Shown here: positions 2,357 to 50,652 of the stretch, piece by piece
Layout: each line of letters starts with the position of its first letter
Numbering within the stretch: the first letter of the stretch is position 1
Assembly: GCF_000315625.1 (NCBI RefSeq)
Contig: NW_005434563.1
Span: 155,387 to 219,386 of the forward strand
Length of the DNA: 64,000 nt
Source of the DNA: Guillardia theta CCMP2712
Lineage: Eukaryota > Protista > Cryptophyta
Reading direction: 5' to 3'
Made by a program: the position numbers and the translations under genes
The notes under the pieces: model-generated
Told to the model about the DNA's origin: nothing
What the model saw: the letters and a program-made list of their open reading frames with translations, nothing else
Databases searched by the model: none

Positions 2357-2834
2357 AGATTATTGGCGTTTGCAGCGAAGTACGAGCTGAGAAGTGTGTT
2401 CTCATCTATCAGCGCTAGGGAGCGAAATGATAGGATATGTTTACTGACTTTTCGTCTTTGTTTAAGTAGATATCCTAGGCAGTCTCGTTTCAACTTAGGA
2501 AATTAGATTACTTACTTTTCTTTATCTCTGACGTCGGTTTGGAATAAAGTACCGTTGGATTGTGCATCGCTGTCACACGCTTGTTCTGAGTTTCTTGACC
2601 GGGGATCACTTCGTGTGTCAACACTGGATCGAGTTTCCTAACAAGTGAGTTCAGCCAACTCACTGTTTGACATCATTTCATTTGTTTACTCAAAAGTCAA
2701 GTCGAAAGTCAAGTAAAAAATTAGTACAGTGGCAGCAGTGGTGGGCGGCCATCTGATCCTCGTGAAGATTTGATTGAGTGATACATAGGGCCACCCAAAA
2801 GTTGAACCGGTCAACCCACTTGCTACTAGCCAAC

Positions 2835-5731
2835 CTACAAAGCTTTCTGATCCGACGGCAGAGCATACTCGAAAGGTTTCCCCGGCTTGCTCGTCAAGCA
2901 CCAGTTGAAAGTCGACAGGTACGCCATAGCGACTATCAGGTGCTTTTGTCGCTTCTCGGTCGACGAGAACTCATTCAAGTATAGCTCTCGCCGAGTCCTG
3001 ATCTTCGCCCAGATCTTGTAGGGCCCATCTTGCTTGTCCCCCGGTCCCCACTTCGCGTTGATCTTCCGCTCGAAGTCCTTCACGTCCGTCGGCCTCTCCG
3101 AGGACTCGAGGAGCTTCTCGACTTCCTTGCTCCTCATCAGCGTCTTGAAGTCTCCGGCTATCAGCTCCGCCTCCTTCATCAAAGCCTTGCCGACCTTCAC
3201 CACGTCCTCATACTTCACCTTGCCCCTCACGTCCTCCCACGTGTCCCCCGGTAAGATGTTGTCAAAGGGCTTGAGAGCCTCCGACAGCTCCGGCTTGTCG
3301 AGGAGTACGGACAAAAATCGTTGTTGTCCCTCTCGAGAAGAAGCCGAAGAGACCGAGGCAGTAGAGGCTTGCGAAAGGGCTGACTCGCTCCCAGCAACAG
3401 ACCGAGCGTCACTGCTCCGAGAGTCCGAGTGCAAGGCAGTAGAGGCTTGTGAAAGAGCATCGCTCCCAGCAACAGACTGAGCGTCATCGCTCCGAATGTC
3501 ATCAGGGTCTCCGAGACGTTTTCCACCTAATGACATCATGGTGAACTCGGAGGCGGCTGGCGGTCTTGACTGCAGGAGAGAGCAAGTCAGTCAACTTCAT
3601 CGCCTAGCTGCTTTCAGCTTCACTCGCCTCCTCGATCACCCTCAGGGGCTGCTTTCCCCATCCCGCCGACCCTCCCGCCGCCTGCTGTCCTCGCTTCTGT
3701 GGGGGTACGTACTTTGCTACTGGAGGGGTTGGCCCCCCGCTCTCCTTCACCTCGAGTCGCAAGTCAGTCAGCTCGCAGCCCCTCCTCCTCACTCTCTCTC
3801 TTGCGGGCACTACCGAGAGCTTCTTCAGCTCCTCGCTGACGTGAGAGTCGACCTCCTGCTCTCGTCCCAGGACTGTCAGCGCCCCTGCCCCGGCAGCCAA
3901 CGTTCACGTTAGTCATCAGCATCTTCCCTCATCAGCATCGGCTCTCACCTCCTCCCTCTAGTGTCTTCAACACCACAAAGCCCACCTCGTCTCCTCCTAC
4001 GCCTGCCAGTAGAGATCGGAGCTGCTCCGCCTCCTCCTTCTCAAGACGCTCCTCCAGCTCCCCGTGCTCATGACTGCCAAACACCCACCCACTGCTGCTC
4101 ACCCACGTTCGAAACCTGCCCTCCGTCTGCTCCCGCTCCCCCCCCTCCTCCCCCCCCTCCTCACTCTCCTCGTCCAACGTCGCCCTCACTCTCTTAGCCA
4201 GCGCCACGGACAAGCAGGCGCAGCTGAGCCTCGTCATCTTCAGAAACGTCACGAAGCTGCCGGTCTCGACCACCCGCGACAGCACGTGCACTGCGAGCAG
4301 AGGGCTCAGCCTCCCGTCCTGATCTGCCGTCATCTTGTCCCTGAGGTACTCCTCTGCTTCGTCTAGCGCCTCCTCCTCCGTCATGTCGCCCTCGTAGAAG
4401 TCTCGAAGCCGCACGTCCTCCTCCCACAAGCGAAGCTCTGACCTCGCTTCCTCGGGCATGTGCGAGAGCGACCTCCTGATCTCCTCGCGTACGGCAAAGT
4501 CGATCGCTGCTACCGCCGTCTTGCCCCTGGTCGACGTCTCGTAGGTCTCTTGTACCCACTGCTCTAGCTCCTCCGACCGGATCTCGTTCCTGCTCATATG
4601 ACCGTTGACAGCCCTGATGAGGTCAGGACCAAGCCTCTTCTTCGATCGCGTCTGGTAGTATCTGCGAGTCGCTTGAGTCCCGTACCTCGTCCCCTCGTAC
4701 CTCAGGAACACCAGCACAAACATCGAGCACACCCGCCACCGCGGACTCTCTTCTAGCAGGCTGCCAAGACTCTCCTGTAGTAGGCCTAGGATGCTGCTTC
4801 GAAACGCGTCTGCTCCTGTCCCAGCTGCTGCAGGGCTGTATCCAGCTACGACCTCTGCTGCAGGGCCCGGGCTTGTCGGCCCTGCTGTTGGATCCTCAAG
4901 CCTCCTCGAGCTCTCCGCGACCCTCCTCGCTCCTTGTTGTATCTGCTGGATGTCTCTTGGGACCGTCGGGTCCGGCCTGATACACAAGCCCTCCGGGATG
5001 AAGACAGTGCAGAACGATACTGCCACCTGCTCTCTGCGGAGACTTTCAAGCATAGCATGCTCGATGGCCTGCTTTAGCCTCATGTTCCGCGCGAACATCC
5101 CATGCTCCTTGTCGAGAAGGTCCCTGAGGAATGCTGACTCATCATCTGCTCTCTGACCTCTGCTGCATGACAAGAAGAGCGAAACTTTCATGCTCCTAGT
5201 CCTGTTGGTTCTCTCTGATTCGATCCTCTCCCTCCCTTGCGCCTCGTCTCTACACGCGTCTATGATGACGAGCAGAGGAGGTAGCCCTTCCACGTTCTCT
5301 GCCCCCGCAGCCATGGCGCTCAGCGCATCTCCGACGGTCACCCTACTCCCTCGTGTCTCCTCTGACACCTCCGGCCTCACGACATCGCATGTCAGCATTG
5401 CGATCTCACCCGAGCTCAGCTGTATAGCATGCCCGGCATAGAACACTAGCATCAGCTCCGGTCGCTTGGTCTGGCAGTCCATGGCGAGAGAGGAAAGCAT
5501 GTCTAACATGGACTGTCTCGTCGTCGGGTTGGCGAGGAAGGAGGAGGAGCAGCCCGGGCTGTCTTCCAGCTCCCTATGTATCCTACGCGCATCTTTGACA
5601 GCCTCAACCAATGGTGCGATATGCGTGTAGGCATCAGCTCCTATGCAGAGAGCCTTGACATGTCGAGTACCTCGCATTTCACTCCGCTCAGCGTGCCTGA
5701 GAGATTGATTATTGATAGATAGATGGAACAA
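2835..5731 (-). CDS. Spliced caspase-like (peptidase C14) multidomain protein, copy 1, apparently intact
   Basis: KALCIGADAY...DARRI...VFYAGHA...IIDACR (His/Cys dyad) plus a p10-like FLSCSRGQRADDESAF. Intron 3948-3885 (GTGAG...GACTAAC...CAG) joins in frame to GALTVLGREQ. An acceptor ending at 3570 joins in phase 0 to the 2835-3539 ORF. First ATG in the large exon is at 5677, and an upstream exon is possible. Confidence 0.85.
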
Positions 5732-6360
5732 AGTAACATGTGTCTTTCATGGTAGATGGAACATGTCTCTCACAGTCTATACAAATGAATAGCGTCAGCA
5801 TGAGCATGAGCAAAAGCTTTGTGTAAGGCTCCTACTTGAGAAGATGCTCTAGTGCGTTCTCTTTTCAGGACTATCTCAGATCATCTCCTTCCTTACTACC
5901 TTCCCTGCTTCTCCTCTCCTCCCTTCCACCAGCATCAGCCACGTTCCCACAGCCTCCTCTTTGCCTTCCTACGAAGAGCCCGCGACCAGATCACCCCACC
6001 ACCACCTGAGCGGATTCCATCTTTCATCACCCCCTCGTCTATGCTTATTAATACCCCTTGCAAGCGACCCTTTCTCTATCACAAGGGGTACCCGTAACCA
6101 TCGGGTGCAGAACATGAATAAAATTAGCTAGCGTTTTCAGGATTTTTCCTAGTTCAAATCCCTGCCCGCAGGATTTTCCTGAAATCACAAGCTTTGTTAA
6201 AACTATTTTATATGCGAGGAATCTGAGTACCCCTACTTTTGTGTTGAGCTCACAAGGGCGCTATCTTAAAACTTTCAAACCCTTTATACAGGCCCGCCTC
6301 AGGACTTGTCGGATTATTCTGAGGCGGGCCCACTGAGGCCTGCTAAACCTTTAATTAAGC

Positions 6361-6860
6361 TTGAATCCTACTCTGAGCGCACATTTATTTCTTTGTGGGA
6401 TGGAAGCGCAGGCTGAGAGACAAGTTGAAGATGAAATGGAGGAGGTAAGCCAAGTAGAGTCTCCGAATGTCAACGAGGATCAAGGCGATCCTTTGGAGGA
6501 CATGCAGGTCCAGGAAGCAGTTGTAATTCCAGGACAGGCCACCGTGACACCGAGGCCTCAATTCGGGGGCCGAAGAAAACGTCAGAGAACAGGTAACGAG
6601 GCCCGACAACCATTGGATGCAGCTCGTGGGCGTCAAAGAATCTCAGAAATCCGATCAAAGAGGGTTCCGCAAAATTCAAGAGCTGCATATACATCTAGTA
6701 TTGTCCGTTTCATACAGTTCGTGTCACATCGAAACAATCCTTTTCTATTGACAACGGAATTCAAAGATTTGATTGAAAGAGATATGGAAGAAGGAGATCC
6801 ACCATTACCATCGAAGAGGATCATACGAATGGTACTGGACGAGAATTCTGTTGGTCAAAG
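6361..6860 (+). pseudogene. Truncated ORF, possibly the N-terminus of a Crypton-like tyrosine recombinase, cut by the retroelement
   Basis: Acidic N-terminus, NLS-like RRKRQR, then RVPQNSRAAYTSSIVRFIQF, which resembles the N-terminal helix of Crypton/Ndc10-type recombinases. No catalytic residues are visible. Confidence 0.3.
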
Positions 6861-9350
6861 ACGCAGAGACCTTCCCCGACTGTGTCTTCCCGGCTTATAC
6901 GGATAACATGGCTGTAGTTGGAAAGCTCTAGGCTCAGTTGCCGCACAAGCCACTGCATCGCTGGTTGATACGTTGAAACAAGAGCTAGGATTGGAGATTG
7001 AATCCAGAGATTCGAAGAGATTCTCCTTCAACCGTCCTGGTGCGAGCTTCAATCTAGTCAGCAACGGGCCATCCAAGAGCATATTTGTAGTAGGTACCCG
7101 GGCTTGCAGCAGTTTGCCTTCTGAGGCCAGGGGATCCTCCTTGGAAGCATCCCGATAGGGTCTCAGTCCTTTCAGCAAGAGTTTATCACTGCCAAGGTGA
7201 ATGCTCTCAACGCTGAATTGACTCAGTTGGAACAATTTCCCATTGCGATGGGTCTCAAACAGCTCGGAAGTTAAAGACGACGCACGTTCCCACCCTCCAA
7301 TACGTCTCACGTGGAATCTCCCCGGCCTTGACAGCTGCCCAGTTCAAGTGCTTTGACATTGCAAATCTCCTTCTCCTTGCGAAGGTATTTCAGTGGCCAC
7401 AGAACCAGGCACAGGAGAGCTCAACTGACCTGTAACCAGGCTGCCCCGAGGTCAACCGGCAATCCATCAAGAAACTTGTCGGCGGCTGCCACCAAGCTGA
7501 TGGGCTGCTGCTCAAAGATCCCAAGGTTTGTACTTTCCATAATTGAGTGCCAGATCCTGTGCTGAGGGGTAAACTGAGACAGAAGTTTATCGACCGGTTG
7601 GCCTGGTACTCGAAGTGGAGTAGAGAAGCTGGAGTGTGTGCCAACAAAGACTGCTGACGCCGCTCAGAAAGGTTTGCCCGAATACTGCAGAACCGAGGAA
7701 ACTCCAACAGGAAATGAGCCGTGAGCTCCCGCTGGGCGGGGTTTAAAAGTACACTACCAGACGTCCCAAACAATTCAGGCGAGGGGATACAGTTATTGTC
7801 GCACTCCTGAGGAAGCTCCGCTACGAAGGTGTATCCCGTGATTCCCTGCTCCATCAAGTGCCTGCGAGTGTCCAAGAACTTCGGAACTGTGCAGCCAGCA
7901 TGGTGACAACTTCCCCAGCGTCCACTTGCTGCGGTTGGCGGATTCGAAGTTCAGTGCCCGAATTGATCCGGTGGAAGAGTGGTGGTGTAGGTAACATCCA
8001 ATGCTGGAAGATGGCGAGTTCTCCCGCCCATTCGAGAAACTTGGCAGTCGCAGACCGTCCAGAATGCGGTGTAGGCCACGCCCTCCTGCGGGGTGAACCC
8101 ATCACATCCAGCACTATAAGGCAACTGAAGATTGAAGTAGGCAAACTCAAGGTCGGACAGAGGGGTATCAGCGAACCTCCTGCCGCACTCCGATAAATGC
8201 CGCCATCTTCTCCGTCATCCAGGGGGGACCATGTGTGGGCGACCTGCAGGCACCGCAGCCCGTTATGGACTGATGCGCATGAGAAGTGCAACACCGTCCT
8301 CAGTACCCTCATCAAAGATTCAGGAGTGAGATGCCGCGTCCATGTGCAAGGCTTTCCCGGCACCAGGCAGAAAGTTTTCCCATGGCCCTGAAGATCATCA
8401 CGTAGGGGACTTTGAACTTCCGCAATTGCAGGCTACTGGAAGCCGATGGCATGGGTTAATCCTGGACTTCAGCATGTCACATGTTTTTGACAATGATGGG
8501 ATACCACACTTGACTCGGAGCAAACTGCAAGCAGCAGCACAGAGGAAAATCCGAGGGCATCGTCATGCATATGCTCAGCACGTCCCGCCAAAGGCCTTTC
8601 TTCCCACCATCGCCAGCACTGATGGACTCTTGCAGGATGATGCGTTGCGCTTTCTGTGGTGGCTGGCGGATCGCTCCGCGAACAAGGAAACTGCAGCGCT
8701 GGATGGTCTCTCGGCCTCGCAAGACGTCTCAGGTGATCCGACTTGCAAACGCATCCGGTCCAGGATCTTTCGTCAGCTCAAGGCATCCCTGTCCTTCGCT
8801 GCCATCATCGCGGGTGCGTTCCGGTATGCGTCTCATTCCTTCGGCGGCGGCCACAGCGACATGAATGGTCCTGCGCGCAGTTAAGTGAAGGTATCAGTTA
8901 AGTTTGGGGGACAGCAGTTGGCAGGAAGAGGCTCATCCGACTGCTGTCCCCCAAACTTAACTGATAGCCAATGATGGGATACCGGACCAGACTCGTAGCA
9001 AACTGCAACTTGCGGCAGCCTGAGCAGCACAGAGGAAGATCCGAGGGCATCGTAATGCATATGCTCAGCACGTCCCGCCCTCGTCCCGCCCTCATCCTGC
9101 CGACTGCTGTCCCCCAAACTTAACTGATACCTTCACTTAACTGCGCGCAGGACCATCGCCGAAGGAATGAGACGCATACCGGAACGCACCCGCGATGATG
9201 GCAGCGAAGGACAGGGATGCCTTGAGCTGACGAAAGATCCTGGACCGGATGCGTTTGCAAGTCGGATCACCTGAGACGTCTTGCGAGGCCGAGAGACCAT
9301 CCAGCGCTGCCGTTTCCTTGTTCGCCAAGCGATCCGCCAGCCACCACAGA
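6861..9350. mobile_element. Degenerate RLE-type (CRE-like) non-LTR retrotransposon 3' part, with an internal inversion and a fold-back duplicated 3' end
   Basis: Plus strand 8195-8884: GDHVWATC...AHE zinc knuckle and restriction-like endonuclease (GDFEL...ILDFSMSH...RKIRGH...Y...FLPTIASTDG). Minus strand ~8130-8050: RT thumb-like LQLPYSAGCDG...AYTAF. 9097-9349 is an inverted copy of ~8653-8926. Confidence 0.8.
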
Positions 9351-9384
9351 AACCAATTGAACCCTCCGGAGGGTTCAATTGGTT
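9351..9384. repeat. Perfect 34-bp palindrome
   Basis: AACCAATTGAACCCTCC|GGAGGGTTCAATTGGTT. Confidence 0.95.
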
Positions 9385-10222
9385 CTCGCTGTCTTCAAGT
9401 TTCTGTTCTCGGCCTCAGTCTCGTCGTTCAACGTTTGACACACTCCGACGACTGACTCAGTGGCTTGCGCGACCCGGACGGTCACCGGGTGTCAAGCCTT
9501 CTCGACTCTCCTGATTGTCCTCGTACTGTACGGTGCCACGGTGTGTGCTTAACAAACAGTGATCCTAAGATCATCTGAGCTCATTGAACGTCCGAGTTAA
9601 GCAAGGCCGCAGCCTAGCCAGTGCCACGTTGTATACTGACAACACAGCCGGGGACTCCCGGAGTCCGGAGTCCGGTCCCGGCAGACTGAGAACACTGTGA
9701 CTGAACTCCGAATCAGCCCGGGCCGCGGAGGCTACTAGCCCGGCCTGCCGTACTAACCCGCCGGCCCGGGTGCACGGATCGGACTCCGGGGACCGTCGGT
9801 CCGATCCGAGCCCGAAGCACTGCCCCACTGGCCCAGTGCGGTCGCAGCGAGTCACGACCGTCGCCGGGCCAACCGTTGAACTTTACTAAAACCTACCGTA
9901 GGTTTGATGGTTTGATTATCCTTTTCTACTTTGTTTGCTCCGGTCACCGGGTTGGCCTTTCAAGCCTAAGTTCAAATTTCCATTTCCGTCGGTCGGACAA
10001 TACAACTGGCAACTTCTGGCAAGACTGAGTCGGAGAGAGCCTCGGCCAACCATTATCCTTGGCGGCCGACTGCTGCAAGCTACCCAAACTTTGAAACTTG
10101 CAGGAGGCTTTTGCAGCCCGGCCTGATATCAGCTACCTGATCCTCGTGAACATTTGATCAGTGAGTAAAACATAGCCCCCCAAAAGTTTAACTTCGACCC
10201 ACTAGCTGAGCTGCTAGTCAAC

Positions 10223-11190
10223 CTACAACGCTTTCTGATCCGACGACAGAGCATACTGGAAAGCACGGGACCAGTTGAAAGTCGACAGGTACGCCATAGC
10301 GACTATAAGGTGCTTTTGTCGAGTCTCGGTTGACAAGCGCTCATTCAAGTATCGCTCTAGCCGAGACAGGAAGCACTCCGGCCTGTTGCTGATCTGCGTC
10401 CAGATCTTGTAGGGGCCTCGTTCCTCCATGTCCTTCGGCCCCCACCTCACGTTGATCTTCCGCTCGAAGTCCTTCACGTCCGTCGGCCTCTCCGAGGACT
10501 CGAGGAGCTTCTCGACTTCCTTGCTCCTCATCAGCGTCTTGAAGTCTCCGGCTATCAGCTCCGCCTCCTTCATCAAAGCCTTGCCGACCCTCACCACGTC
10601 CTCATACTTCACCTTGCCCCTCACGTTCTCCCACGTGTCCCTCGGTGAGATCTTGTCAAAGGGCTCAAGAGCCTCCGAGAGTCCGAGTGCAAGGCAGTAG
10701 AGGCTTGTGAAAGAGCATCGCTCCCAGCAACAGACTGAGCGTCATCGCTCCGACTGTCATCAGGGCCTCCGAGGCGTTTTCCACCTAATGACATCATGGT
10801 GAACTCGGAGGCGGCTGGCGGTCTTGACTGCAGGAGAGAGCAAGTCAGTCAACTTCATATGTGAAAGTACGTACTTTGGTACATGCCCCCCCGCTAATCT
10901 TCACCTCGAGGCGCAAGTCTGCTCTCCCTCCCTCCCTCCCTCCCTCCCTCCCTCCCTCCCTCTCGCTCTCTCGCTCTCTCCCTCCCACCCTCTGGCTCCC
11001 TCCCTCCCGCCCTCCCCTCCCCCCCCCTCTCTCTCTCTCTCCCTCTTTCCCTCTCTCTCGCTCTCTCTCTCCCTTAAAGACTGCCAGAGGGGGCTCAGCC
11101 TCCCGTTCTGATCTGCCGTCATCTTGTCCTTGAGGTACTCTTCTGCTTCCTGCACCTCCTCCTTCCAGTCGCCTCATCGCCTCGTCCTCA
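10223..11190 (-). pseudogene. Internally deleted fragment of the caspase-like gene (copy 3): C-terminal exon plus a piece of the middle domain
   Basis: Contains EAEEYLKDKMTADQNGRLSPL and VRGKVKYEDVV...AMAYLSTFNW. A 136-nt deletion relative to copy 1, between CTCCGA microhomologies, shifts the frame near 10678. No caspase domain. Confidence 0.85.
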
Positions 11191-11469
11191 CAGCGCTCCT
11201 GTTGCATGGATTAGTCTCTACGCAGACTTGCGAGCTCGCCTCATTCACTCGAGCCTTCACTGCACGTCCGCCTCAGGTGTACCGAGCGGCAGATCTACCA
11301 TGACAGGAGCTCTAGGTCAACTTCAAGCTCTATTACAAAGAATCGCTGTCCTTCAGCCCGGTCCCAAATAGAGCCTCTCCAAAAAGAAGTCGTACCCCTC
11401 ATCATCCCCTACTACTACTGGGAGAGGACCCGTGGTATCCGTACACAACATCCTTTCCCACCAGCCGCC

Positions 11470-14400
11470 ATGAAGCGCAGGCTAGCAGAGGCATGGTCGG
11501 GTTGGTCCCTGAGAGGAGATGAGAAGCGATCAAGATCCGAGGAAAGCGGTGGAAGCGGCAACCGAGGAAGCATCGTCTCTGCCGATGACTTGCGTGCTGG
11601 ACGCAAATATGACCTGCAGAATCAAGCGAGAGAGCTCGGGCTGATCCTGACACCTCAAGGTCGATACGTCCTCGAGGCATCGAGTCGTCGCAAGTTCTTT
11701 GCCTCGAGCCTTCCCTCCGGTCAGATCCTCTGGGAGACCGACGAGCAAGTGGACGGAGAGGACGTGGAGGAGATCCTCGTGGCCATGACCCGACTAGATC
11801 AGTCCGTCCATGTCAACACGGGCACTCACGGCACTGCAGACGGAGAGCTCAAGACAGCAGGAGGAGAAACGATTGACTTCTTTCGAGAAGACTTTGAGAG
11901 CATCAAGAAGCTGGAGGAGAAGGCGAAGGTGTCGCTGCATCAGGTGACCTCTCAGAGCGGGCCTTACCTGCCTCTCAACGCCAACATGGTCATCAACGGC
12001 TGGTGCTACAGCCATCGGTACGGCTTTGCGAGCAAGGTGGACCTCAACACGGGCAGGATCCCGGAGGACAAGCACGTGGAAGGGACGTACTGCAACCTGC
12101 CGAAGCGTCTGCGGGAGACGATCAAGAGCTCGCTGGGAGACGAGGAGGCGGTGGACGACGCCATGGGCTGCTACTTGGAGACCAACTGCACGGACACAGA
12201 CCCCGAGGTGAGAGTGACAGCAGGGGAGCGCTCGGGAGATCTTCTCGACCGCTTCATGCAGGACAAGCAGAAGCGCGTGCTGGTGCTGCTCGGGTACGCG
12301 GGGGCGGGCAAGTCGACGCTGGTGAGGAGGTGGGCGATCGAGAAGGGAGAGGCATGGAAGGAGGGGGAGCCGTATCCAGTGTATCTGCATCTGCCGAGGT
12401 GCAGGAGCGTGAAAGCGTACATGGAGGAGGCGGCAGGAGTATGTTTCGGAGGCGAGGAGGCATGGCGAGGCTTCATCAGGGCACGATCGTTCTTGGTGGT
12501 GCTGGACTCGTACGATGAGATAGGGGAGATGGACAACGTGGTGGCGAAGGTGATGAAGGAGCTCGCGGGCTGCCGGGGAGTGAAGGCAGTCCTCACTTGT
12601 CGGAGCGGCTACTTGCAGAAAGAAAACGCGTCTAACCCGCTCCTCTGGCCCCCGGGTACGGGAGGACAAGACGCTGTGCAGGTGGCTTGGGTGTGTCCGT
12701 TGAGTCTGAGGGACGAGGGTCGTGTCCGCCGGTACATTGAAGCGCACGCGAGGTCATCGGGCAGGGACTGGAGCAGCGAGAGGTGCAAAGAGGGGATGAG
12801 GGCGGTGCAGGAGCTGCGAGATGTAGTGAGCACGCCCTACTCGTTGAAGGTGCTGCTTGTCGCGCTTCCCCGGCTACAGGAGAAGAAGAGGAGGAGGCCG
12901 AGCTGGACCATCTCACGGCACAACATGCACAAGGAGTACGCCAAGGAGTGGTACAGGAGAGAGTGGGAGAAGCTGGCGCAGAGGCAGGAGCTTGCAGAGC
13001 AGGCCAAGCAAGCGGGAATGAGAGACGGGAACTACATGGAGTGGTACTCACGCGGGGCCAAGCATGTCTGTCTCTACATGCACAGAGAGCAGAGGAAGCA
13101 TGTCGTTCTCAAGGAAGGCGACGGCTTCTCGTCTGTCGCTCCTTTCAGCTTGCGGATGAGAGGAGGCGACGTGACGCAGCAGCTGGGGTACTGGCTGCTG
13201 CGCGGCAGCCTGACTCGCGTGAAGCACAACAAGCGAGAGGGCAGTCTGGAGGTAAGCTTTGTCCACGACCTGTACCGGAGCTTCTTCCTTGCGGAGGCAA
13301 CCTTGGAGGAGCTTCGGAAGAAGGAGGACGGGCAGGCGGACGAGGCTGTGCGAGTGCCAGCGAGTCTGTCGGTGCGAAACCTCCGAGGCGAGGTCGAGAC
13401 GATCAAGGAGCACGCCATTGTCGTGCAGGGCAAGCGCAAGTACCAGGAGAGGCTGTTTGACGTCATGAGAGCCTCGCGGGAGGACGGAAGCGAGGAGACG
13501 GGGAGGGCGTCAGCGAACGCGGCTACGATCTTGGTGGCAGCGAGCGTGAGCTGGTCGGGTCTAGACCTGTCGGGTGTGCGAGTGGCAGGGCAATCTTGAG
13601 GAACGGCATCTTCCATCGGACGGACTTGAGGTGGGCTGACCTGCGCGGGGTGGACGCGAGCCACGGATACTTTGTGGAGACGCGGCTGGAGGGAGCGAGA
13701 CTGGAGGGAGCTGACTTTGGGGAGAGGGCGACAGTGAGGATCGAGTGCAAGGAGGTGAGATGCGGGGCGTTCGAGCCCGGGGGGATGACTCTAGCAACAG
13801 TGTCGGAGGACGGGAAGATAAGGGTGTGGAATGTGGAGACCGGAAGGTGTGTGAGGGAGCTTGGGAGGGGAGGGGAAGAGATCGATATGATTCGATGGAG
13901 GGCTGACGGGAAGAGGCTGGCGTCGGGGTCGAGGAGAGGGAGGATAAGGGTGTGGGACGTGGAGACAGGAGGATGCTTCCTTGACCTTGAGAGGAAGGAG
14001 GAGATAGGGGAGATAGGCTGGGTGGGGGACGAGAGGATCGCTTGGTGGACGCACAGGAGGGAATACTGCATGCAAACAATGGACGTGGAGCTGGGAGTGT
14101 GCACTCGCGAGCACAAACTTGAAAGGGCTGGGAGACACTCAACACGTTTTGGGCCTGAGGGGCCCGACGGGAGGAGGCTCGCGGGCGTGTCGGAGTCAGG
14201 GGGACGGGTGTGGGTGTGGGATGCAGAGACGGGGAGGGGCGAGGAGCTGCAGGAGGGACCCGAGGGAGGAGTGAGGGGGGCTGAGCTGGGGGCCGGACGG
14301 GCACACTGTTTACGCGGCATATGTCTAATGGGTCGATCAAGACTTGGACATTGAGGGATGAAGGCTTGTTTCTTCTCACAGCTGATTTCAATCGAAACGA

Positions 14401-14533
14401 GAGAGAGCTTGTGTGTCGCTATGCTTCAATCGACCAGTCGCTCTCCAGCCCCGTCAGACGCCTGCTGGAGGAGAGAGGAGCCGTCGCTCAGGCTAACACA
14501 CCAACCAGAGGCTCGTGGTGCTGTGTACAGTAG
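11470..14533 (+). CDS. Intronless NLR-like STAND protein: His/Cys protease-like N-terminus + NACHT + pentapeptide repeats + WD40; frameshifted in the 3' third
   Basis: Walker A GYAGAGKS, Walker B FLVVLDSYDE, sensor VLTCR. ASANAATILV...SGLDLSGVRVAG leads into pentapeptide repeats, then WD40 repeats (IRVWNVETG, IRVWDVETG) and a terminal LLEERGA. Single-base frameshifts at ~13589, ~14278 and ~14320. Confidence 0.9.
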
Positions 14534-15094
14534 AGGTCTTGAGGGAGTGGAGGAGGTTCTGTTCGATTACATGTCAGGCAGCTCAGCGTGTCTCTTCTCT
14601 GCCTTCATCTTCCTCTGGCTCCTCGTTTCTGTCGCCTTGTGTGCTCATGTTCTCGAGATCTGGTCCCCCGCTGAGATCCATCCAAGACCTCCATGTCCCC
14701 TCGCCTCCCACGTCCTGAGCTCCTGCAGTCCTGGTGTCTGCTGCCGCTGACTCTTGCGCATTCCTCCTCCTCCTCCTCGAGCTCCTGCGCCTCTTGCTGA
14801 TCCGTGCCTCAAGGCTCGTGTAAGGCAAGCGAGCTCTCGCTGTTATCCTCAGCCCGCTCCCCTATGTCCTGCTTTCCTTGTCTCCATCCTTCGAGCAGGA
14901 GGGGTAGCGCTCGTCCCTCTCTCAGCCACAAGCTCCTGCTCATCCCTCTCCGCGCGGCAACAGACTCCTGCCCCTTCTCTCCCTCACCATCAGCTTCCTG
15001 CCCTTTTCGCGCCTCCCTCACCCATCGCTCCCTCCTTTCCGCCTCCCTCTCGCCGTCTCCTCTCGCAACCAAGCCTTTCTCGCCCCTCCTCTCC

Positions 15095-16870
15095 TCACGC
15101 CTGTGCCCCTCCGCCTCTCTGCCTCGACATCTGGCTCTGCACAAACACGTTCTTGCTCGACCTCTCGCTCCTCTGCGACCTCTGGTTCTCCTCCGCGATC
15201 TGAGACCAGTGCATCGACCCGCTGCGAGGAGTGCTGCCCTCCAACCCCTCCGACGGGGCAGCAAGCTGCGGAGCGGGGCCTCGAGCGGAGCTCTGAGCGC
15301 TTCTTGGGGTGAGGACCCTCGACGCCAGCGCAGCGAGCATGTCAGCGCGGGAGAGGGTCTGACTCCTCCTCGAGTCTGAGTCTGTGAGGGGGGAGGCCTG
15401 CCTCGGGGTGACGAGGCGATGAGTGCCTGGCCGAGAGTCGCTCCCTCCGCTCGTCGCCGCCCAGTAGAGTGCGTGCAGCTGATCGGAGAGCAGGAGAGCT
15501 GCTCGGGGACTCGTCGTGCGGTTCCTTCGCACATGGGTCGAGGGCATCTGCGGACGGCAGTCATCTCCTCGCAATTCATCGCACAGCAGATACACACGCC
15601 CTTGTCCACCTCCTCCTCTCACACCCTTCTCACGTTTGCTCGCAGACGCTCAGCCCGTCCCTTGTCACCCCCTCTCACCATGTCCAATGACGGGACGTCG
15701 CTCGCCCTGCTGGCCCCTCGCGGTAGAGAGCCTCTGGACTCTACCGTCCTCGGCGAGCTCCTCACTCTATCCGGCGGGTCAAGGTCCTTCATCTTTGAAA
15801 GCTGCGCTCGAATGATTCGCAGGTTCAGCTCGTGCGTCTTGGGGAAGAAGCTGCTCGACCGCAACGTCCCTGCGGCTGACTCGCTCTTCAAGTCTGCCTG
15901 CTCGTCAAACTCCGCATCGCAGTCTGTTTGGACGCTCTCGTTGAGCGTGGATGTCTCTCTGCCACGACTCTGGATCGTTTGTTGAAGATGTCTGATGGAC
16001 TCAAGCTCGGACCGCATGCATCTTGGACAGCACGTACACATCCGACTCTGCATCCTCCCCTCCCTCCTCCTCCAGCCGCTCCAGAACTGCATCCCGCAGC
16101 GGATGGTAGTCCCCGGACGCTGTGCTTTCTGTGCGCATCGACTTGTAGTCCGACTCTGCCGTCGGCGAGTAGAGACTGCCATGGAGGTCGGCGTGGGGCT
16201 CCTCTTGGACGAGCCTGGACTGGTCGGGCAGCAGGGACTTCTTCCTGGCTAAGGTCAGAAGGTTGAGCATGTCATCCTCGGACTCTGCGTCATCGGACCT
16301 GTCCAACAACTTGGGTTGGAGCATGTGGGTGAAGCTGCTGTCGGACCCTTGCGACAGGTCGCTCGCCATGGGCTGTCTGGGAGGTATCTTCGGGAAGATA
16401 TCCTCCTGCTGAAGCTCGCTCTTCATAGGACGAGAGAAGCTCTCGTTCCTCTCCGACCCTGAATCTGTCTCAAGGAAGCCTCGCAGACGCTCCTGCCCCT
16501 TATCGAGCCCATCCTCCACCCCAAAGTCCTTGAAGCTCTCGAGGTTGTCGGTGTGAGTTGAGTCGTCCGTTGAGTTGAGGTCACTGCCCGAGGGCTTGGA
16601 GGAGGACACATGCTCTCGCGGTCTCCCCAGACATGCTCGGAAGCACAAGACCTTCCTCAGGTCTATCAAGCCGAAGCACTGCACCAGGTAGATGATAACT
16701 ATCATACTCAACAGTACCAACCCTACTTGCACGTACCTTTGCCAGCACATGTAAGGTACCATGGAGAAGAGTCTCTTATGCACATTACCATTGCATAGTT
16801 GACCTGCTGACAAACTCTTCTCTGTGCTCCTGAAGCGATAATGCAGATTTTCAATGACTTTCAAGTACAC
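15095..16870 (-). CDS. Hypothetical spliced single-pass membrane protein with Ser/acidic tail; boundaries approximate
   Basis: Hydrophobic VQVGLVLLSMIVIIYLVQCFGLI followed by hydrophilic consecutive minus-strand ORFs (16001-16870, 15619-16182, 15095-15622). Confidence 0.4.
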
Positions 16871-17833
16871 AATTTGATGCTCTGATCGGAGGTGCTAAGA
16901 GAGTCACTGCAGCATGGAGCCTGAGGAATCAGGCAGCTCATGCGGCTTGTGCGGCGGAGCTTTCGCACCTCAGTGAGCCCGGTACAAAACCCCACTGAAT
17001 CCGATCACCATGATGATCATGCTATGCTATCTCCGCCCTCCCCTCCCCACACACACCCCTCTTCGCGCCGCCTTCTCCTCTTCCTCCTCCCCCTCCCTGC
17101 CTCTCAGCTCTCCGTCCTTCACCGCAGAGCCCCCTCCCTCTCGCTCCCTCGGCAAGTCTTATCTTCACACAATGCCAGGTTTGTATTCAGGTCCTCGGTC
17201 TTCTCCACGCTATGTACAAGTTTTAGTAGTCTACAGAGCCTCGGGCGGTCTTGCGTCCTCGTCGCGGCTATCTGACGCCTACCCGAGGCACCTTGAACGT
17301 CTGCCCGAAATGAGGCTCCAGCATCTTGAGCTTGTCGAAGCCTCCGACGGATGGTGACGTAGTCGTTGGTGCTGGTGCTGGCGCTGGTGCTGGCGATGGC
17401 GATGTTACGATCATCGTCCTCGTCGTCCAGCAGCAGCTGCCCGACTGTCTCAGCGAGGCGCCTGCAAAAGATGGCGACGAGAAGGAGCGTGACGATCAGG
17501 AGGTCTCGCCATGACGAGCCGAGGAGGACTTTGAGGGGAGCGAGGTTCAGCTCGGAGTCTGAGAGGAGGGAGGCGACGGTGTGCGAGTCGAGGAGGAGGG
17601 AGGGGGAGGTATGAACAGGAGGAAAGGGGGAGGAGTTGATGGATGTGTGGAGCATGGCGGGGGCATACAGCGACAGACTCCCTTCCTCGTTTGTAGGGGG
17701 AGTATTTTATTTGAAAGGAGCTTATTTCAATGGGACTCGGGAGGAGCAGTGTCAGCAGTCACGGTACCCTCGCACAAGCGAAGCTCTGACAATCCTGATC
17801 AAAGATCATAGTACTGACGGTAGCTGACAGCTG

Positions 17834-20679
17834 CTAGGAAGCTTTCTGATCCGAAGGCAGAGCATACTCGATAGGCTTCCCAGGCTTGCTCGTCAAGCAC
17901 CAGTTGAAAGTCGACAGGTACGCCATGGCGACTATCAGGTCAGCCTGTCGCTCCTCGGTCGACAAGAACTCATTCAAGTATCGCTCTAGCCGAGACAAGA
18001 AGCACTCCGGCCTATTGCTGATCTTCGCCCAGATCTTGTAGGGGCCTCGTTCAATGTCCCCCGGCCCCCACCTCGCGTTGATCTTCCGCTCGAAGTCCTT
18101 CACGTCCGTCGGCCTCTCCACTGAGGTCCCGAGGAGCTTCTCGACTTGCTTGCTCCTCATCAGCGTCTTGAAGTCTCCGGCTATCAGCTCCGCCTCCTTC
18201 ATCAAAGCCTTGCCGACCCTCACCACGTCCTCATACTTCACCTTGCCCCTCACGTTCTCCCACGTGTCCCCCGGTGAGATGTTGTCAAAGGGCTCGAGAG
18301 CATCCGACAGCTCCGGCTTGTCGAGGAGTGCGGACAAGATTCGTTGATGTCTCTCTCGAGCAAAAGCCGAAGAGACCGAGGCAGTAGAGGCTTGCGAAAG
18401 AGCTGACTCGCTCCTAGCAACAGACTGAGCGGCATCGCTCCGACTGTCATCAGGGTCTCCAAGGCGATTTCCACCTCATGACATTCTGGTGAACTCGGAG
18501 GCGGCTGGCGGTCTTGACTGCAGGAGAGAGCAAGTCAGTCAACTTCATCGCCTAGCTGCTTTCAGCTTCACTCGCCTCCTCGATCACCCTCAGGGGCTGC
18601 TTCCCCCATCCCGCCGACCCTCCCGCCATCTGCTGTCCTCGCTTATGTGGGGTTACGTAGTTTGGTGCTGGAGGGGTTGGCCCCCCGCTCTCCTTCACCT
18701 CGAGTCGCAAGTCAGTCAGCTCGCAGCCTCTCGTCCTCTCTCTCTGTCTCTCTCACTCTCCCTCACGGGCACTACCGAGAGCTTCTTCAGCTCCTCGCCG
18801 ACTTGAGAGTCGACCTCCTGCTCTCGTCCCCAGACTGTCAGCGCCCCTGCCCCAGCAGCCAACGTTGACGTCAGTCATCAGCATCCTCCCTCATCAGCAT
18901 CGGCTCTCACCTCCTCCCTCTAGTTTGCTCATCGCCACAAAACCCTCCTCGTCTCCTCCTACGCCTGCCAGTAGAGCTCGGAGCTGCTCCGCCTCCTCCT
19001 TCTCAAGTCGCTCCTCCAGCTCCCCGTGCTCATGACTGCCAAACACCCACCCACTGCTGCTCACCCACGTTCGAAACCTGCCCTCCTCCTCCTCCCCCTC
19101 CTCCTGCTCCTCACTATCCTTGTCCAGCCACCCTCACTCTCTTAGCCAGCGCCACGGACAAGCAGGCGCAGCTGAGCCTCGTCATCTTCAGAAACGTTAC
19201 GAAGCTGCCGGTCTCGACCACCCGCGACAGCACGTGCACTGCGAGCAGAGGGCTCAGCCTCCCGTCCTGATCTGCCGTCATCTTGTTCTTGAGGTACCCC
19301 TCTGCTTCGTTCAGCGCCGCCTCCTCCGTCATGTCGCCCTCGTAGAAGTCTCGAAGCCGCACGTCCTCCTCCCACAAGCGAAGCTCTGACCTCGCTTCCT
19401 CGGGCATGTGCGAGAGCGACCTCCTGATCTCCTCGCGTACGGCAAAGTCGATCGCTGCTACCGCCGTCTTGCTCCTGGTCGACGTCCCGTAGGTCTCTTG
19501 TACCCACTGCTCTAGCTCCTCCGACCGGATCTCGTTCCTGCTCATATGACCGTTGACAGCCCTGATGAGGTCAGGACCAAGCCTCTTCTTCGATCGCGTC
19601 TGGTAGTATCTGCGAGTCACTTGAGTCCCGTACCTCGTCCCCTCGTACCTCAGGAACACCAGCACAAACATCGAGCACACCCGCCACCGCGGACTCTCTT
19701 CTAGCAGGCTGCCAAGACTCTCCTGCAGTAGGCCTAGGATGCTGCTTCGAAACGCGTCTGCTCCTGTCCCAGCTGCTGCAGGGCTGTATCCAGCTACGAC
19801 CTCTGCTGCAGGACCCGGGCTTGTCGGCCCTGCTGTTGGATCTTCCAGCCTCCTCGAGCTCTCCGCGACCCTCCTCGCTCCTTGTTGTATCTGCTGGATG
19901 TCTCTTAGGACCGTCGGTTCCGGCCTGATACACAAGTCCTCCGGGATAAGCTCTGTGCAGAACGATACTGCCACCTGCTCTCTGCGGCGACTTTCAAGCA
20001 TAGCATGCTGGATGGCCTGCTTTAGCCTCATGTTCCGCGCGAACATCCCATCCTCCTTGTCCAGAAGGTCCCTGAGGAATGCTGACTCATCATCTGCTCT
20101 CTGACCTCTGCTGCATGACAGGAATAACGAAACCTTCATGCTCCTAGTCCTGTTGGTTATCTCTGATTCGATTCTCTCCCTCCCTTGCACCTCGTCTCTA
20201 CACGCGTCTATGATGACGATCAGAGGAGGTAGCGCCTCCACGTTCTCTGCCCCCGCAGCCATGGCGCTCAGCACGTCTCCGACGGTCACCCTGCTCCCTC
20301 GTGTCTCCTCTGACACCTCCGGCCTCACGACATCGCATGTCAGCATTGCGATCTCACCCGAGCTCAGCTGTATAGCATGCCCGGCATAGAACACTAGCAT
20401 CAGCTCCGGTCGCTTGGTCTGGCAGTCCATGGCGAGAGAGGAAAGCATGTCTAACATGGACTGTCTCGTCGTCGGGTTGGCGAGGAAGGAGGAGGAGCAG
20501 CCCGAGCTGTCTTCCAGCTCCCTATGCATTCTACGCGCATCTTTCACAGCCTCAACCAATGGCGCGATATGCGTGTAGGCATCAGCTCCTATGCAGAGAG
20601 CCTTGACACGTCCAGTACCTCGCATCTCACTCTGTTGAGCGTACCTGAGAGATTGATTATTGATAGATAGATGGAACAA
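17834..20679 (-). pseudogene. Caspase-like multidomain gene, copy 2: full length but with two lesions
   Basis: Near-identical to copy 1, including introns and the AGHA/DACR dyad. A 2-nt deletion near 19128 shifts the frame (homologous DKDSEE...GRFRTW continues in another frame). TTA>TGA nonsense change at 18476-18478. Confidence 0.85.
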
Positions 20680-22155
20680 AGTAACATGTGTCTTTCATGG
20701 TAGATGGAACATGTCTCTCACAGTCTCTACAAATGAATAGCATGAGCATGAGCATGAGCATGAGCATAAGCTTTGTGTAAGGCTTATACTTGAGAAGATG
20801 CTCTAGTGTGTTCTCTTTGTGAGGACTATCTCAGATCATCTCCTTCATTGCTACCTTGCCTGCTTCTTCTCTCCTCCCTTCCACCAGCATCAGCCACGTT
20901 CCCACAGCCTCCTCTTTGCCTTCCTACGAAGAGCCGGCGACCATTGAGCCCCGCTACCTCATTTCCCAGTAGACCACCCTACCCACCATCAATTAGATTC
21001 CATCTCTTTTTTACCCCTTCTTTTTAGGTTATTCATACCCCCTCTCCTAGCACCCTTGCAAATCTCCCACCTCTAGCAGTAGGGGTACCCGAAGCCAAGG
21101 CTGATGCGTGTGCCCACTTTAGTTAACCTTGACTAAGGGTCAAAAGATCGGATCGGGCAAACTTTACTCAAAGTTAAAAGTAGACATGCGCCGCAATGCG
21201 GGACAGAATGAAGATCGAATGCGTATGTAAAGGTCATGCTGCACTTGTATGAGGTTCCAGCATCACATATATTGCATGATTCTCTCATGTAGTATGCCTG
21301 ATGCTGTCATGTAGAACATCAACAACATGAAACGGTAAATTATGATGTCTTTTATTGCATGAACTTCGTCACTTCAAGCGAATGCCCGCGATGTCTGGGT
21401 CTTCCATTTAGGATTTGCGGTTCCAATACACGCCTTCCAAAGAGCAATTCACTAGAATCTGCATAGCTTGACAAACTGATTCTCAGACAGCAGCGACGTT
21501 TGCCCGTTCGAATTTCCGCTTTACCTCTGCTTTTTCTTTAACCTATGTATGTTACTGTGAAAACGTGCTGTATGTAACCATGTGTTAAGTAAACGATATC
21601 ATTCGCAAAACTTTAGTACCATTGTCCTCATTGAGCACACCGTAACAGGGAAGCAGTCCTCACTGTTTCAGTGACGTTCGACGAGCGACTCGAACCGATT
21701 ATAAAGAGTCGGGGTATGCTCATGCTTGCATACTTGCACGAGTCTAATCTGACAGGATGCGTGTTGACGTCATGTTGTCAGTCAGATGGGAAGGCCAAGG
21801 TACACGACAAGGAGGTCTCAAAGTTAAGTTGCACAAAGTTAAGTTACGAGGCTCAAAGTTAAGTTACAACCAGTGATGAGGACAATCATCATAGCCTGAG
21901 CCTGGAGTAGACTCTGAGGAGGCTTGACCCGGTCAGTGACACTGCCGCACAGCCCATACATACACGGTCCGATACCCGGCAAGTCACAGGCTGCCAGAGT
22001 AAGGCTAAGTTGACATATACTATGATACACGGTACGGTCCGAGCGGCGGTCGGGCGCGGCCGCCCGGGATCCGGGCTACCTTTGGAGCTGGCGGGCAGCC
22101 CGCTGACCGTACTAGGCTGTACGCAGTGTAGGCAACTTGCACTGGGCCTATGCCT

Positions 22156-23275
22156 TCATCTGTACGGTGCCTTCAGATCTATTTCGGCATCAACGTCACT
22201 GACGGTAGCTGACAGCTGCTGGGAAGCTTCAGGCTGATCCGATGGCAGAGCATACCGTTCGAAAGGCTTCCCCCGCTTGCTCGTCAAGCACCAGTTGAAA
22301 GTCGACAGGTACGCCATGGCGACTATCAGGTCAGCCTGTCGCTTCTCGGTCGGTGAGAACTCATTCAAGTATCGCTCTAGCCGAGACAAGAAGCAGTGCT
22401 GCATTTTTTTTACGGTCCCAGTCCAGATCTTGTAGGGCCTTGATGTCTTGTCGTCCGCCCCCCACCTCGCGATGATCTTCCGCTCGAAGTCCTTCACGTC
22501 CGTCGGCCTCTCCACTGAGGTCCCGAGGAGCTTCTCGACTTGCTTGCTCCTCATCAGCGTCTTGAAGTCTCCGGCTATCAGCTCCGCCTCCTTCATCAAA
22601 GCCTTGCCGACCTTCACCACGTCCTCATACTTCACCTTGCCCCTCACGTTCTCCCACGTGTCCCCCGGTGAGATGTTGTCAAAGGGCTCGAGAGCATCCG
22701 ACAGCTCCGGCTTGTCGAGGAGTGCGGACAAGATTCGTTGTTGTCTCTCTTGTTTGTGGTCTCGTTTGGAGCGGGTAGACGAGGCTGGGATGGTTGGATC
22801 CTGCGATGCAGAATCGCTAGTGGACCGAGCGGCATCGCTCCGACTGTCATGCACTGGTCTTCTCCCGGATCTCTTCCTCCCGGAGGCAGCTGGTAATCCT
22901 GCCTGTCAGACAGAGAGAGAGAGCGATTCAGTCGATCGCGCAGCTTCTTTTAGCTTCACTCGCCTCCTCGATCTTCCTCACCTGCTGTCCTCGCTCATGT
23001 GTGGGCACGAGCTTTGCTACTGGAGGGGTTGGCCCCCCTCTCTCCTCCACCTCGAGTCGCAAAGTCAGTCAGCTCGTAGCCTCTCCTCCCCTCTCTCCCC
23101 GCCCCCATCTCCTCTGTCTGTCTGTCTGTCTGTCTGTCTCTTTCTCCCTCTCACGGGCACTACCGAGAGCTTCTTCAGCTCCTCGCTGACTTGAGAGTCG
23201 ACCTCCTGCTCTCGTCCCAGGACTGTCAGCGACCCTGCCTCGGCAGCCAACTTTCATGTCAGTCATCAGCATCCA
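22156..23275 (-). pseudogene. 5'-truncated copy 4 of the caspase-like gene (last three exons intact, no protease exon)
   Basis: GSLTVLGREQEVDSQVSEELKKLSVVP exon, conserved introns and a complete C-terminal domain ORF. Homology stops at ~23275, inside an intron. Confidence 0.8.
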
Positions 23276-44048: not shown

Positions 44049-45369
44049 TCTTATTTGCCCATCTTTTCTCAGTTTTTCCCTTTCACTTCTCCAATCTCAC
44101 AATTCCTTCAGAGTTTTATGAGGAGCGATATGACGAGGTAAAACTTCTTTGTCCCCCTCCTCCTCCCCAATCCTCCCCAATCCTGCATGATAACCCCTGC
44201 CATCCTCCTCCCTCCCCACACCTCTCACTCCCCTTCTCTCCCTCCCCTCGGTTCTCTCTCTCCCCTCGTCTTTCTCTCTCCCCTCGTCTCTCCCTTCCCT
44301 CGTCTCTCGCTCTCAGCACTGATACAGGTACGATCTCCTCACTGAGTGTCGGAGGATGCTTCCTCAACGACAAGAAGCGCTCGGAGCTTCTCTGCAGCTN
44401 NNNNNNNNNNNNNNNNNNNNNNNNNNNNNNNNNNNNNNNNNNNNNNNNNNNNNNNNNNNNNNNNNNNNNNNNNNNNNNNNNNNNNNNNNNNNNNNNNNNC
44501 TCTCTCTCTCTCAACCTCTCTCTCAACCTCTTCCTCCTCATTCTCCTTTCTGGCTTGCTCTTGTTGCTCCTGCGCCGTCTTCCCTTTCTCTAGCCTACTT
44601 TTCCTCCTCTTCCTTCTCCCTGTGCCCCTACCTCTCTCACCCTGTTCTTCATCTATGTACACTTTCTCCTCCTGTTTCTCCTGTTCCCCATCCTTCTACT
44701 TGTTTCATCTTTTCACATTCCCAACCATTAAGTCTTCGGCTCCGCTCCTCCATTGCTCCTCTAATCTTTTCCTAACCAGAGATCTCCGTGCTCTCCAAGC
44801 TGGAAGCGAGTCTGCGCTGCTCGTGCGAGGAGGAGCGATTGTTCTCAGCTGCTCTCCGCTCAACGCTGTTGTGACATCGCAGGTGATAGGGAGGGGCAGA
44901 GGGAGAGAGGGGGGCGGGAGAGCAATGCGGAGCAAGAGGAGCTGGGTCATGCTGAAGGAGGCGCGGGGGTGGTGGAGGAGGAGAGGTCCTTGGGAGTGGG
45001 GAAGGGGGGGGGACGAGATGCAGGAGACTGATCTTAACTCGACTGCAGCAAGCGTTCGTGGTAGTGCCCGACGGGGCCGACGACTTGCTGGAGCCGCTGC
45101 TGCATCGAGTTCAGAAGCTTCGCGGGACTGAAGATGTGATTTTTTCCTCCTATCTGCTATCCAGATGCTCTCCACCTCCTTCCTGTCGTTCTCCTGCCCT
45201 CTCACGACAGACTGCAGAGCTGCGGCATGATCGACTTCGAATTTGTAGCGCTGGAAGGTGAGAATGAGATCGGGGAGGACAAGGGAGAACAGGAGGAGCA
45301 GGAGATGGGGGTGGAGGGAAAGAGATAAGTGAAAAATGTTTCGAGCAAGCGAGGGAAGACAAGAGCAGA

Positions 45370-45437
<68 letters not shown>

Positions 45438-50274: not shown

Positions 50275-50652
50275 ATGACCTCTCTCTTGTACGCCTCTCC
50301 GGACTGGCAAGCTGCCTCTGCCCAGCCCGCCGATCTCTTGCTCATGCCCGGGGGGTCCAGCGCATCTCTGGCTATGGGGACCTGCCGTCATGCTGTCTGC
50401 CTCAGCCTCAGCCATCTCGGGCATCTCGGCTTTGTGATGCTGGTGCTGGCAGCAGCGCTGGTGCAGTTTATCCTCTCTGACGACGACTTCAAGGACGGGA
50501 CGAGCCCGGAGGCGGACCCTCCCAGGCCTGCAGCGGTCGACATGCCGCCGAGCAGCTACTTGAGCGGAGGCTTCGACCGACGGAAGATGCTGCAGCCGAG
50601 CTTCGGGCAGACGTTCAAGGCGAAGCGAGTGGGAGCATGTCAGGAGGAGTAG
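50275..50652 (+). CDS. Small hypothetical protein in duplicate unit 1
   Basis: MTSLLYASPDW...DDDFKDGTSPE...KAKRVGACQEE*, with TTTATTAAAA upstream and AATAAA downstream. Confidence 0.45.
   Translation: MTSLLYASPDWQAASAQPADLLLMPGGSSASLAMGTCRHAVCLSLSHLGHLGFVMLVLAAALVQFILSDDDFKDGTSPEADPPRPAAVDMPPSSYLSGGFDRRKMLQPSFGQTFKAKRVGACQEE

Follow-up and report, generated by a model that had tools for sequence, protein, structure and literature searches.

The island at positions 2753-23278 of the DNA analysed here, a 64,000-nucleotide stretch of nuclear, intron-containing DNA of the cryptophyte Guillardia theta CCMP2712 (the window, which corresponds to C111:155387-219386 of the searched genome of 87.1 Mb in 669 contigs), harbours four minus-strand copies of a lineage-specific caspase-like gene (self-BLAST) and, between them on the plus strand, an NLR-like gene whose product combines a Tox-HDC domain, a NACHT NTPase, pentapeptide repeats and WD40 blades. 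The reading that we favour, with slightly better than even confidence, is that of a young birth-and-death array of probably active caspase-like proteases that lies beside one gene, in decay, of an NLR-like family whose members are dispersed in the genome. That sensor and protease work as a pair at this locus is possible but unlikely. Coordinates are window positions unless a contig is named. Exons and the two frames of the NACHT gene were searched separately, and the only whole spliced model used was the database model P0001 (GUITHDRAFT_117482 of G. theta CCMP2712), which is also the best database match of the caspase-like open reading frame (ORF).

The caspase-like gene forms a 3.1-kb unit that is present twice with 94% identity (copies A and C in Table 1; self-BLAST). 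The long ORFs of these copies, at 3932-5731 in A and at 19114-20679 in C, match Peptidase_C14 above the curated cut-off (E 8.8e-13 and 2e-13, respectively), and in both of them the catalytic His (AGHA) and the catalytic Cys (DACR) are kept. The caspase domain is absent from fragments B and D, and a Pfam scan of their ORFs was empty; the terminal exon nevertheless stays an open frame in both fragments, while a further ORF of fragment B (10845-11207) is of low complexity and matches no Pfam family. The earlier note on this DNA had counted two full-length and two partial caspase-like copies, and this count holds, with A and C being complete and B and D being 3' fragments. Its statement that many copies are broken can even be extended, since the NACHT gene is frameshifted as well, and since copy C lacks the segment FRTWVSSSGW, which is conserved in the rest of the family.

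If the intron of copy A is retained, a stop codon follows after five codons, resulting in a short form of ~580 amino acids, and such a short form is also found in P0003 from Hanusia and in the environmental protein P0002, whereas the spliced P0001, P0004 and P0005 run into further exons. Splicing at a conserved GG/GT site would add an exchangeable C-terminal module to a putatively active protease that consists of a p20-type domain and a conserved helical domain of ~300 amino acids. In the 3' part of copy C, the assembly and the contigs of three public runs (X1, X2 and X11) disagree: at 18356-18423 the contigs have 72 other letters for 66 assembly bases, and all of them show C>T at 18219. This could reflect a difference between assembly and reads, an extra unassembled copy, or contigs that are mixed between copies.

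The sequence divergence within the island points to a low age of the array. Between A and C, the synonymous divergence (dS) is 0.06 and the ratio of nonsynonymous to synonymous divergence (dN/dS) is 0.43, and the terminal exons are apart by dS 0.2-0.3 with dN/dS 0.6-0.9. A block of 186-189 nt in the terminal exon deviates from the pairing of the whole genes, in which A belongs to C: in this block, A and B differ at 2 of 186 nt, and C and D at 1 of 189. Such a mosaic would result if short tracts were exchanged by gene conversion between a full copy and its upstream stump. Purifying selection on an invariant block was considered and rejected, because the synonymous sites of the block are identical too, and for the same reason gene conversion is favoured over a constraint at the protein level. 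A block duplication of a unit "fragment plus full copy" was likewise rejected, as the spacers B-A and D-C are non-homologous. In the genome search, the terminal-exon module was found in four open copies, all in this window and none elsewhere, and it has neither a Pfam relative nor a usable match in the ESM Atlas.

The family to which these genes belong is large in G. theta and narrowly distributed. There are at least 24 genome matches to the p20 domain of copy A, and at 16 further G. theta loci this domain and the ~300-amino-acid helical domain are in one open frame. Of 24 family members, 22 have an intact His-Cys dyad (AGH[AG], DACR), and only the environmental P0002 (Ser) and C97_229k (Gly in place of the catalytic Cys) deviate. 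Outside G. theta, the family was found only in transcript-derived proteins of Hanusia phi and on two environmental contigs, and everything else amounted to four weak, generic caspase-domain matches. No relative was detected in a scan of JGI metagenome contigs and IMG/VR viral contigs, and therefore there is no sign of a viral origin. The largest array lies on contig C97 (156-232 kb), where at least nine copies are present in ~80 kb, and contig C136 holds an inverted pair. A maximum-likelihood tree places A and C, with support 93/99, in one subfamily with the gene of the environmental contig L010, the inverted pair on C136 and three Hanusia proteins, and this subfamily is distinct from the C97-type copies. 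The L010 gene (ENA ERZ930071, L010:1158-2939), which comes from a Guillardia-like organism, is ~90% identical to A and C at the DNA level and has its catalytic Cys replaced by Ser; it is followed by a Methyltransf_15 gene in place of the C-terminal exons of the island. On C97, the copies C97_156k and C97_175k are almost identical, and a close relative of the window copies (81-85%) at 231-232 kb is split into two frames within the caspase domain.

With respect to the fold, AlphaFold (AF2) gives a confident caspase fold for residues 1-140 only, with predicted local distance difference test (pLDDT) values of 70-82 and low confidence beyond, and the best Foldseek matches are metacaspase 9, MALT1 and caspases (E 4e-4). 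The PF00656 match spans profile positions 3-189 of 233 and the model is weak after residue 140; a p10 domain was not recognised, though one may exist. These proteins best fit the p20-only, "metacaspase-like" group. The helical domain folds at pLDDT 76-93 over ~140 residues (residues 30-170 of the AF2 model), and neither Pfam nor the PDB nor fold searches revealed a match: Foldseek found nothing at E <= 0.001, the ESM Atlas gave no usable match, and a sequence search of the PDB with the family profile gave none either. VIA-align reached a best Z of 5.2 for this domain. An MLKL-like or death-fold identity was dropped, as the Z of 3.6-3.8 obtained with CARD/death-like folds is within the noise for helical models, and the matches to other helical bundles do not rise above it either.

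The NLR-like gene of the window is the second main component of the island. Its Tox-HDC domain, scanned as isolated domain, matches PF15656 with 23.0 bits at a cut-off of 21, and its NACHT domain, with 21.3 bits, stays below the cut-off of 26.7, which is exceeded by the paralogs on C13, C118, C288, C122, C188 and C107. Two Hanusia proteins, P0011 and P0012, are 57-61% identical to this gene, and P0013, the model of a paralog in G. theta, aligns with 11449-14530. That the gene lies head-to-head at ~280 bp from a caspase-like copy, as the earlier note had described, is borne out by measurement: its ATG is 263 bp away from the ATG (11207) of the low-complexity ORF in fragment B, and 297 bp away from the last caspase-gene homology (11173).

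The gene is not intact. The G run at ~13586-13588 is one base shorter than in the C62 paralog and in the Hanusia proteins including P0012, the NACHT-encoding ORF consequently stops at 13599, and the pentapeptide-WD40 frame has no early ATG that could be seen. As contigs of the three public runs X1, X2 and X11 span the site without any difference or splice, the frameshift is real and not an assembly error. The head, NTPase and repeats are continuous in P0012 and P0017 from Hanusia as well as in the G. theta paralogs, and interrupted in the window copy, whose WD40 part is moreover the shortest of the family, with open frames of 794 + 252 amino acids versus 1110-2120 in the paralogs.

In total, 12 G. 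theta loci share the Tox-HDC head and the NACHT part, and close relatives exist in Hanusia. Among 30 relatives, drawn from 93 that were found by an exhaustive search, the residues H84, H90, D111, H127 and C149 hardly vary. The members are spread as single loci, with repeat arrays of variable length and with pseudogenes. Tox-HDC has been defined as a family of predicted thiol peptidases or transglutaminases (Zhang et al. 2012, PMC3482391), and the NACHT family would thus have an NLR layout that carries its own predicted effector. Intact members may sense a ligand via their pentapeptide and WD40 repeats, and would then oligomerise and turn on their own N-terminal Tox-HDC enzyme. The window copy, in contrast, would yield a sensor-less Tox-HDC-NACHT protein, or nothing useful, and its adjacency to the caspase-like genes is for this reason probably not that of a working pair in this strain.

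Both genes are transcribed. X1 and X2 behave like transcriptomes, as their contigs total 40-44 Mb and their depth varies from 0 to >300 along the stretch, and these contigs cover the NACHT gene (depth 115-186 in X1, 23 in X2) and also the terminal exon of copy C. In raw RNA-seq reads (X15, of which ~6% of the run was read), plus-strand reads are seen at 14200-14599 and minus-strand reads at 17800-18399. Whichever sense the first mate of this library has, the opposite orientation of the reads at the NACHT gene and at copy C is as predicted from the strands of the two genes.

If the two families acted together, one might expect them to be neighbours at other loci, and the earlier note had suggested testing for a co-location above expectation in the whole genome. 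The outcome that it had named as a refutation, unlinked paralogs at other loci, largely applies: at the 11 other loci of the NACHT family, no caspase-like gene comes closer than 50 kb, and the smallest distances are 59 kb (C62) and 92 kb (C118). When all 28 NACHT loci were compared with all caspase-domain loci under random placement, with the prompting window left out and contig ends ignored, no significant excess remained (P 0.16, 0.19 and 0.14 at 10, 60 and 100 kb, respectively), nor was there one for the Tox-HDC-NACHT family considered separately (P 0.10-0.28). By Pfam, no shared recruitment or adaptor domain (CARD, death fold) was found on the NACHT protein and the caspase-like protein, and the G. 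theta NACHT and caspase-like proteins have no similar segment in common; such a segment is seen only in the Hanusia protein P0005. Co-folding of the caspase plus helical part of copy A with Tox-HDC gave a score of 0.00 and the verdict "no answer", which is evidence neither way.

Several observations weigh against the view that an unconnected array and a decaying neighbour simply lie side by side. The most important one is P0005 of Hanusia phi, which belongs to the subfamily of A and C and joins a caspase-like protein in frame to the start of Tox-HDC. The order in this protein is caspase-like part, conserved splice point, a K/E-rich linker of 130 amino acids, and the first 57-65 Tox-HDC residues, and its tail is 47% identical over 57 amino acids to the window protein (E 2e-12), while its identity to the head of P0017, which has the Tox-HDC-NACHT-pentapeptide-WD40 layout in full, reaches 63%. 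Both ends of P0005 are missing, so that a NACHT part may follow its tail. The protein is transcript-derived, from a single transcriptome assembly, and a second search for proteins that share its linker and tail returned only P0005 itself, so that its junction might be an assembly chimera. The open frame over 130 linker codons argues against mere read-through, and the fusion argues for a functional tie of the two families. A second adjacency of this kind exists on C87 (180.2-191.5 kb), formed by unrelated genes: a gene for a complete, type-I-like metacaspase (PF00656 positions 2-232 of 233, E 7e-20) precedes, by ~1 kb and in the same orientation, a giant gene that encodes four C2 domains, DUF4062, an NPHP3-like NACHT, TPR, C2 and ankyrin repeats. 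Moreover, the NACHT gene shows transcript coverage in spite of its frameshift, with a depth similar to that of its neighbours, and the confinement of the terminal-exon module with its four open copies to the island means that there may be an island-specific role.

Which other explanations of the island have to be weighed? Apaf-1 with caspase-9, the inflammasomes, and those STAND proteins of bacteria and fungi that carry caspase-fold domains are precedents for a working module of the kind that the earlier note had envisaged: a virus or parasite would be recognised by the NACHT protein, which would switch on the caspase-like proteases encoded next to it and thereby bring about regulated cell death. 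The adjacency and head-to-head layout, the transcription of both genes, the Hanusia fusion and the second, unrelated pair on C87 agree with it, but the frameshift separates the presumed sensor from its repeats, the WD40 array is the shortest of its family, the caspase-like copy opposite the NACHT gene is a truncated one that lacks the protease domain, the NACHT protein has its own effector, a shared recruitment domain was not found by Pfam, and the families are not linked elsewhere; we therefore consider such a module unlikely at this locus. What remains of the earlier proposal are the conflict-type character of the families, the NLR layout, the transcription and the P0005 fusion, whereas linkage at other loci, an intact sensor and an adaptor did not materialise. 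A cascade of two proteases, as in polymorphic toxins, would be a different way to connect the components: the caspase-like domain would process or release the Tox-HDC enzyme, which in Hanusia would happen in cis and in Guillardia in trans. The order of domains in P0005 would suit this, and caspase domains are listed as a protease that accompanies Tox-HDC in bacterial polymorphic toxins (PMC3482391), but with one truncated, transcript-derived protein, no second example, and no linkage elsewhere in G. theta, we regard this cascade as very improbable.

At the other extreme, the arrangement may be a coincidence without any immune role, with families of ordinary regulatory or proteolytic function that happen to be neighbours in a stretch close to a contig end, where repeats are frequent and the DNA is rearranging. 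The absence of linkage at other loci is compatible with this, as are the retroelement, the tandem repeats and the recent duplications of the window, and no immune-type Pfam family was found in ten other large ORFs of the window. However, lineage-specific expansion in an array, frequent pseudogenes and a relaxed dN/dS of 0.4-0.9 are typical of conflict genes, as is an NLR layout with a toxin-type head, and chance alone hardly accounts for the Hanusia fusion, which makes pure coincidence a rather doubtful explanation. Both families do look like conflict-type genes, in that they are lineage-specific, expanded, organised in arrays and rich in broken copies. Since one Hanusia protein joins them, the two families appear to share an evolutionary history, and it is conceivable, albeit at low odds, that the p20-only proteases and the Tox-HDC-NACHT-WD40 receptors of Guillardia and Hanusia are one system that is fused in Hanusia and split in Guillardia. 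If this were true, the lineage would possess a protist NLR in control of two different thiol proteases, put together independently of the animal apoptosome and inflammasome, and what is left of this coupled system in the island would be partly decayed. The birth-and-death array beside a decaying receptor gene remains the reading that we prefer; the array, whose protease gene is restricted to Guillardia and Hanusia, would then evolve by duplication, gene conversion, truncation and retroelement insertion.

How do these genes relate to known systems? p20-only C14 metacaspase-like proteases, or orthocaspases, are known from bacteria and phytoplankton (Choi & Berges 2013, PMC3734836; Klemencic & Funk 2017, PMC5756287), and metacaspase-like proteins of G. 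theta have been mentioned in passing as "data not shown" (PMC3734836). The island family resembles them in its caspase-haemoglobinase fold, the His-Cys dyad, the absence of a recognisable p10 and of a prodomain, and the variable domains that follow p20. It differs from them by its ~300-amino-acid helical domain, by the spliced-on, exchangeable C-terminal module, and by its occurrence in Guillardia, Hanusia and environmental contigs only. The NACHT family shares with the WD40-containing NLR/STAND proteins (Apaf-1, fungal HET-E-type and bacterial NACHT/Avs proteins) the succession of effector head, NACHT NTPase and C-terminal repeats, and like them it comprises many genes, among them pseudogenes, whose repeat arrays differ in length. 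Unlike Apaf-1, HET-E and Avs, however, it has a Tox-HDC head rather than CARD, TIR or HET, and pentapeptide repeats precede the WD40 blades; there is no death-fold adaptor to a caspase, and the window copy is frameshifted.

The Tox-HDC head itself agrees with that of bacterial polymorphic toxins (PMC3482391) in its Pfam match over the cut-off and in the conserved H, D/N, C signature, and the caspase as accompanying protease of the bacterial Tox-HDC parallels the Hanusia fusion. The domain described here is in contrast eukaryotic, and it is N-terminal to a NACHT switch instead of being the tip of a secreted toxin, and in its function it is a predicted enzyme only. Tandem duplicates, truncated copies, gene conversion and transposon insertions are features that the island has in common with the NLR clusters of plants and animals, with the important difference that here the protease gene is duplicated and not the NLR, as the NLR-like family consists of dispersed single loci. 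A literature search found no paper on NACHT genes of Guillardia. New relative to known systems are the helical domain and the spliced-on exchangeable tails of metacaspase-like proteases, and the Tox-HDC head on NLR-like receptors.

Regulated cell death and innate immunity of eukaryotic phytoplankton are poorly understood, and whether NLRs and caspases are coupled outside animals, fungi and bacteria is an open question; the locus described here does not show such a coupling. It rather defines two cryptophyte-specific families, with ~24 caspase-like loci and 12 Tox-HDC-NACHT-WD40 loci, for whose possible connection the Hanusia fusion is one concrete lead. With its gene conversion, 5' truncation and retroelement insertion, the protease array is also a clear case of birth-and-death evolution in an alga.

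Table 1. Features of the caspase-like gene island and its NLR-like gene (window positions)
Feature	Position	Strand	Basis
Copy A, complete caspase-like gene	2753-5988	-	Pfam PF00656 E 8.8e-13, His in AGHA, Cys in DACR
Copy A exon 1, caspase p20 and ~300-aa helical domain	3947-5677	-	
Copy A intron, 55 nt, canonical GT-AG	3892-3946	-	
Copy A small exon	3796-3891	-	
Copy A terminal exon, island-specific C-terminal module	2838-3398	-	
Copy B, 5'-truncated caspase-gene fragment	10223-11173	-	self-BLAST
Copy B terminal-exon module	10229-10741	-	
Copy B remnant of helical domain, ~90 nt	11080-11173	-	
Copy C, complete caspase-like gene, GUITHDRAFT_117482 (P0001), 782-aa model	17813-20943	-	
Copy C exons, five (P0001 mapping)	19117-20625, 18909-19040, 18758-18853, 18465-18518, 17837-18445	-	
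Copy D, 5'-truncated 3' fragment	22198-23278	-	self-BLAST
Copy D terminal-exon module, frame still open	22162-22875	-	
Copy D preceding small exon	23149-23235	-	
NLR-like gene: Tox-HDC, NACHT, helical region, pentapeptide repeats, short WD40 array	11470-14530	+	Pfam, relatives
First ORF, Tox-HDC and NACHT P-loop	11470-13599	+	Pfam
Tox-HDC domain, predicted thiol peptidase or transglutaminase effector	11719-12018	+	
NACHT P-loop NTPase core, Walker A-like GAGKST, Walker B-like LDSYDE	12274-12618	+	
Frameshift site, stop at 13597-13599	13586-13599	+	
Pentapeptide repeats and about four WD40 blades, other frame than NACHT ORF	13596-14530 (ORF 13596-14354)	+	
Multi-copy retroelement fragment	6372-9352	.	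at least 636 candidate genome matches, 84-97% identity
Low-copy spacer with minus-strand ORFs, not repeat DNA	14540-17810	.	few paralogous matches, on C144 and C71

The spacers between the copies differ in nature, and the earlier description of the island as being interleaved with retroelement debris is correct for the fragment between copies A and B, and not for the low-copy spacer between the NACHT gene and copy C. The ORFs of the retroelement fragment match no Pfam family, and a full copy of the element on C42 has an ORF of 886 amino acids with RVT_1 (E 3e-8). The middle ~720 bp of the fragment (~7448-8171) are inverted relative to most other genomic copies, as seen in comparison with L011:4449-6503, and the fragment contains a 281-bp inverted repeat (8651-8931 versus 9090-9352). 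The ORFs of the low-copy spacer are without a Pfam family as well. Sharp depth peaks and loose ends of transcriptome contigs at 14600-14800, 16000-16200 and 17200-17600 in this spacer may mark the exons of at least one minus-strand gene that is not annotated, or may be cross-matches of low complexity.

Self-BLAST also revealed repeats and other recent duplications elsewhere in the window: a tandem repeat of short period at 1-450 recurs at 45360-45990 with 77-81% identity, and a segment of 1.5 kb is doubled at 99% identity (49176-50711 and 50982-52512), with ~270 bp between the two copies.

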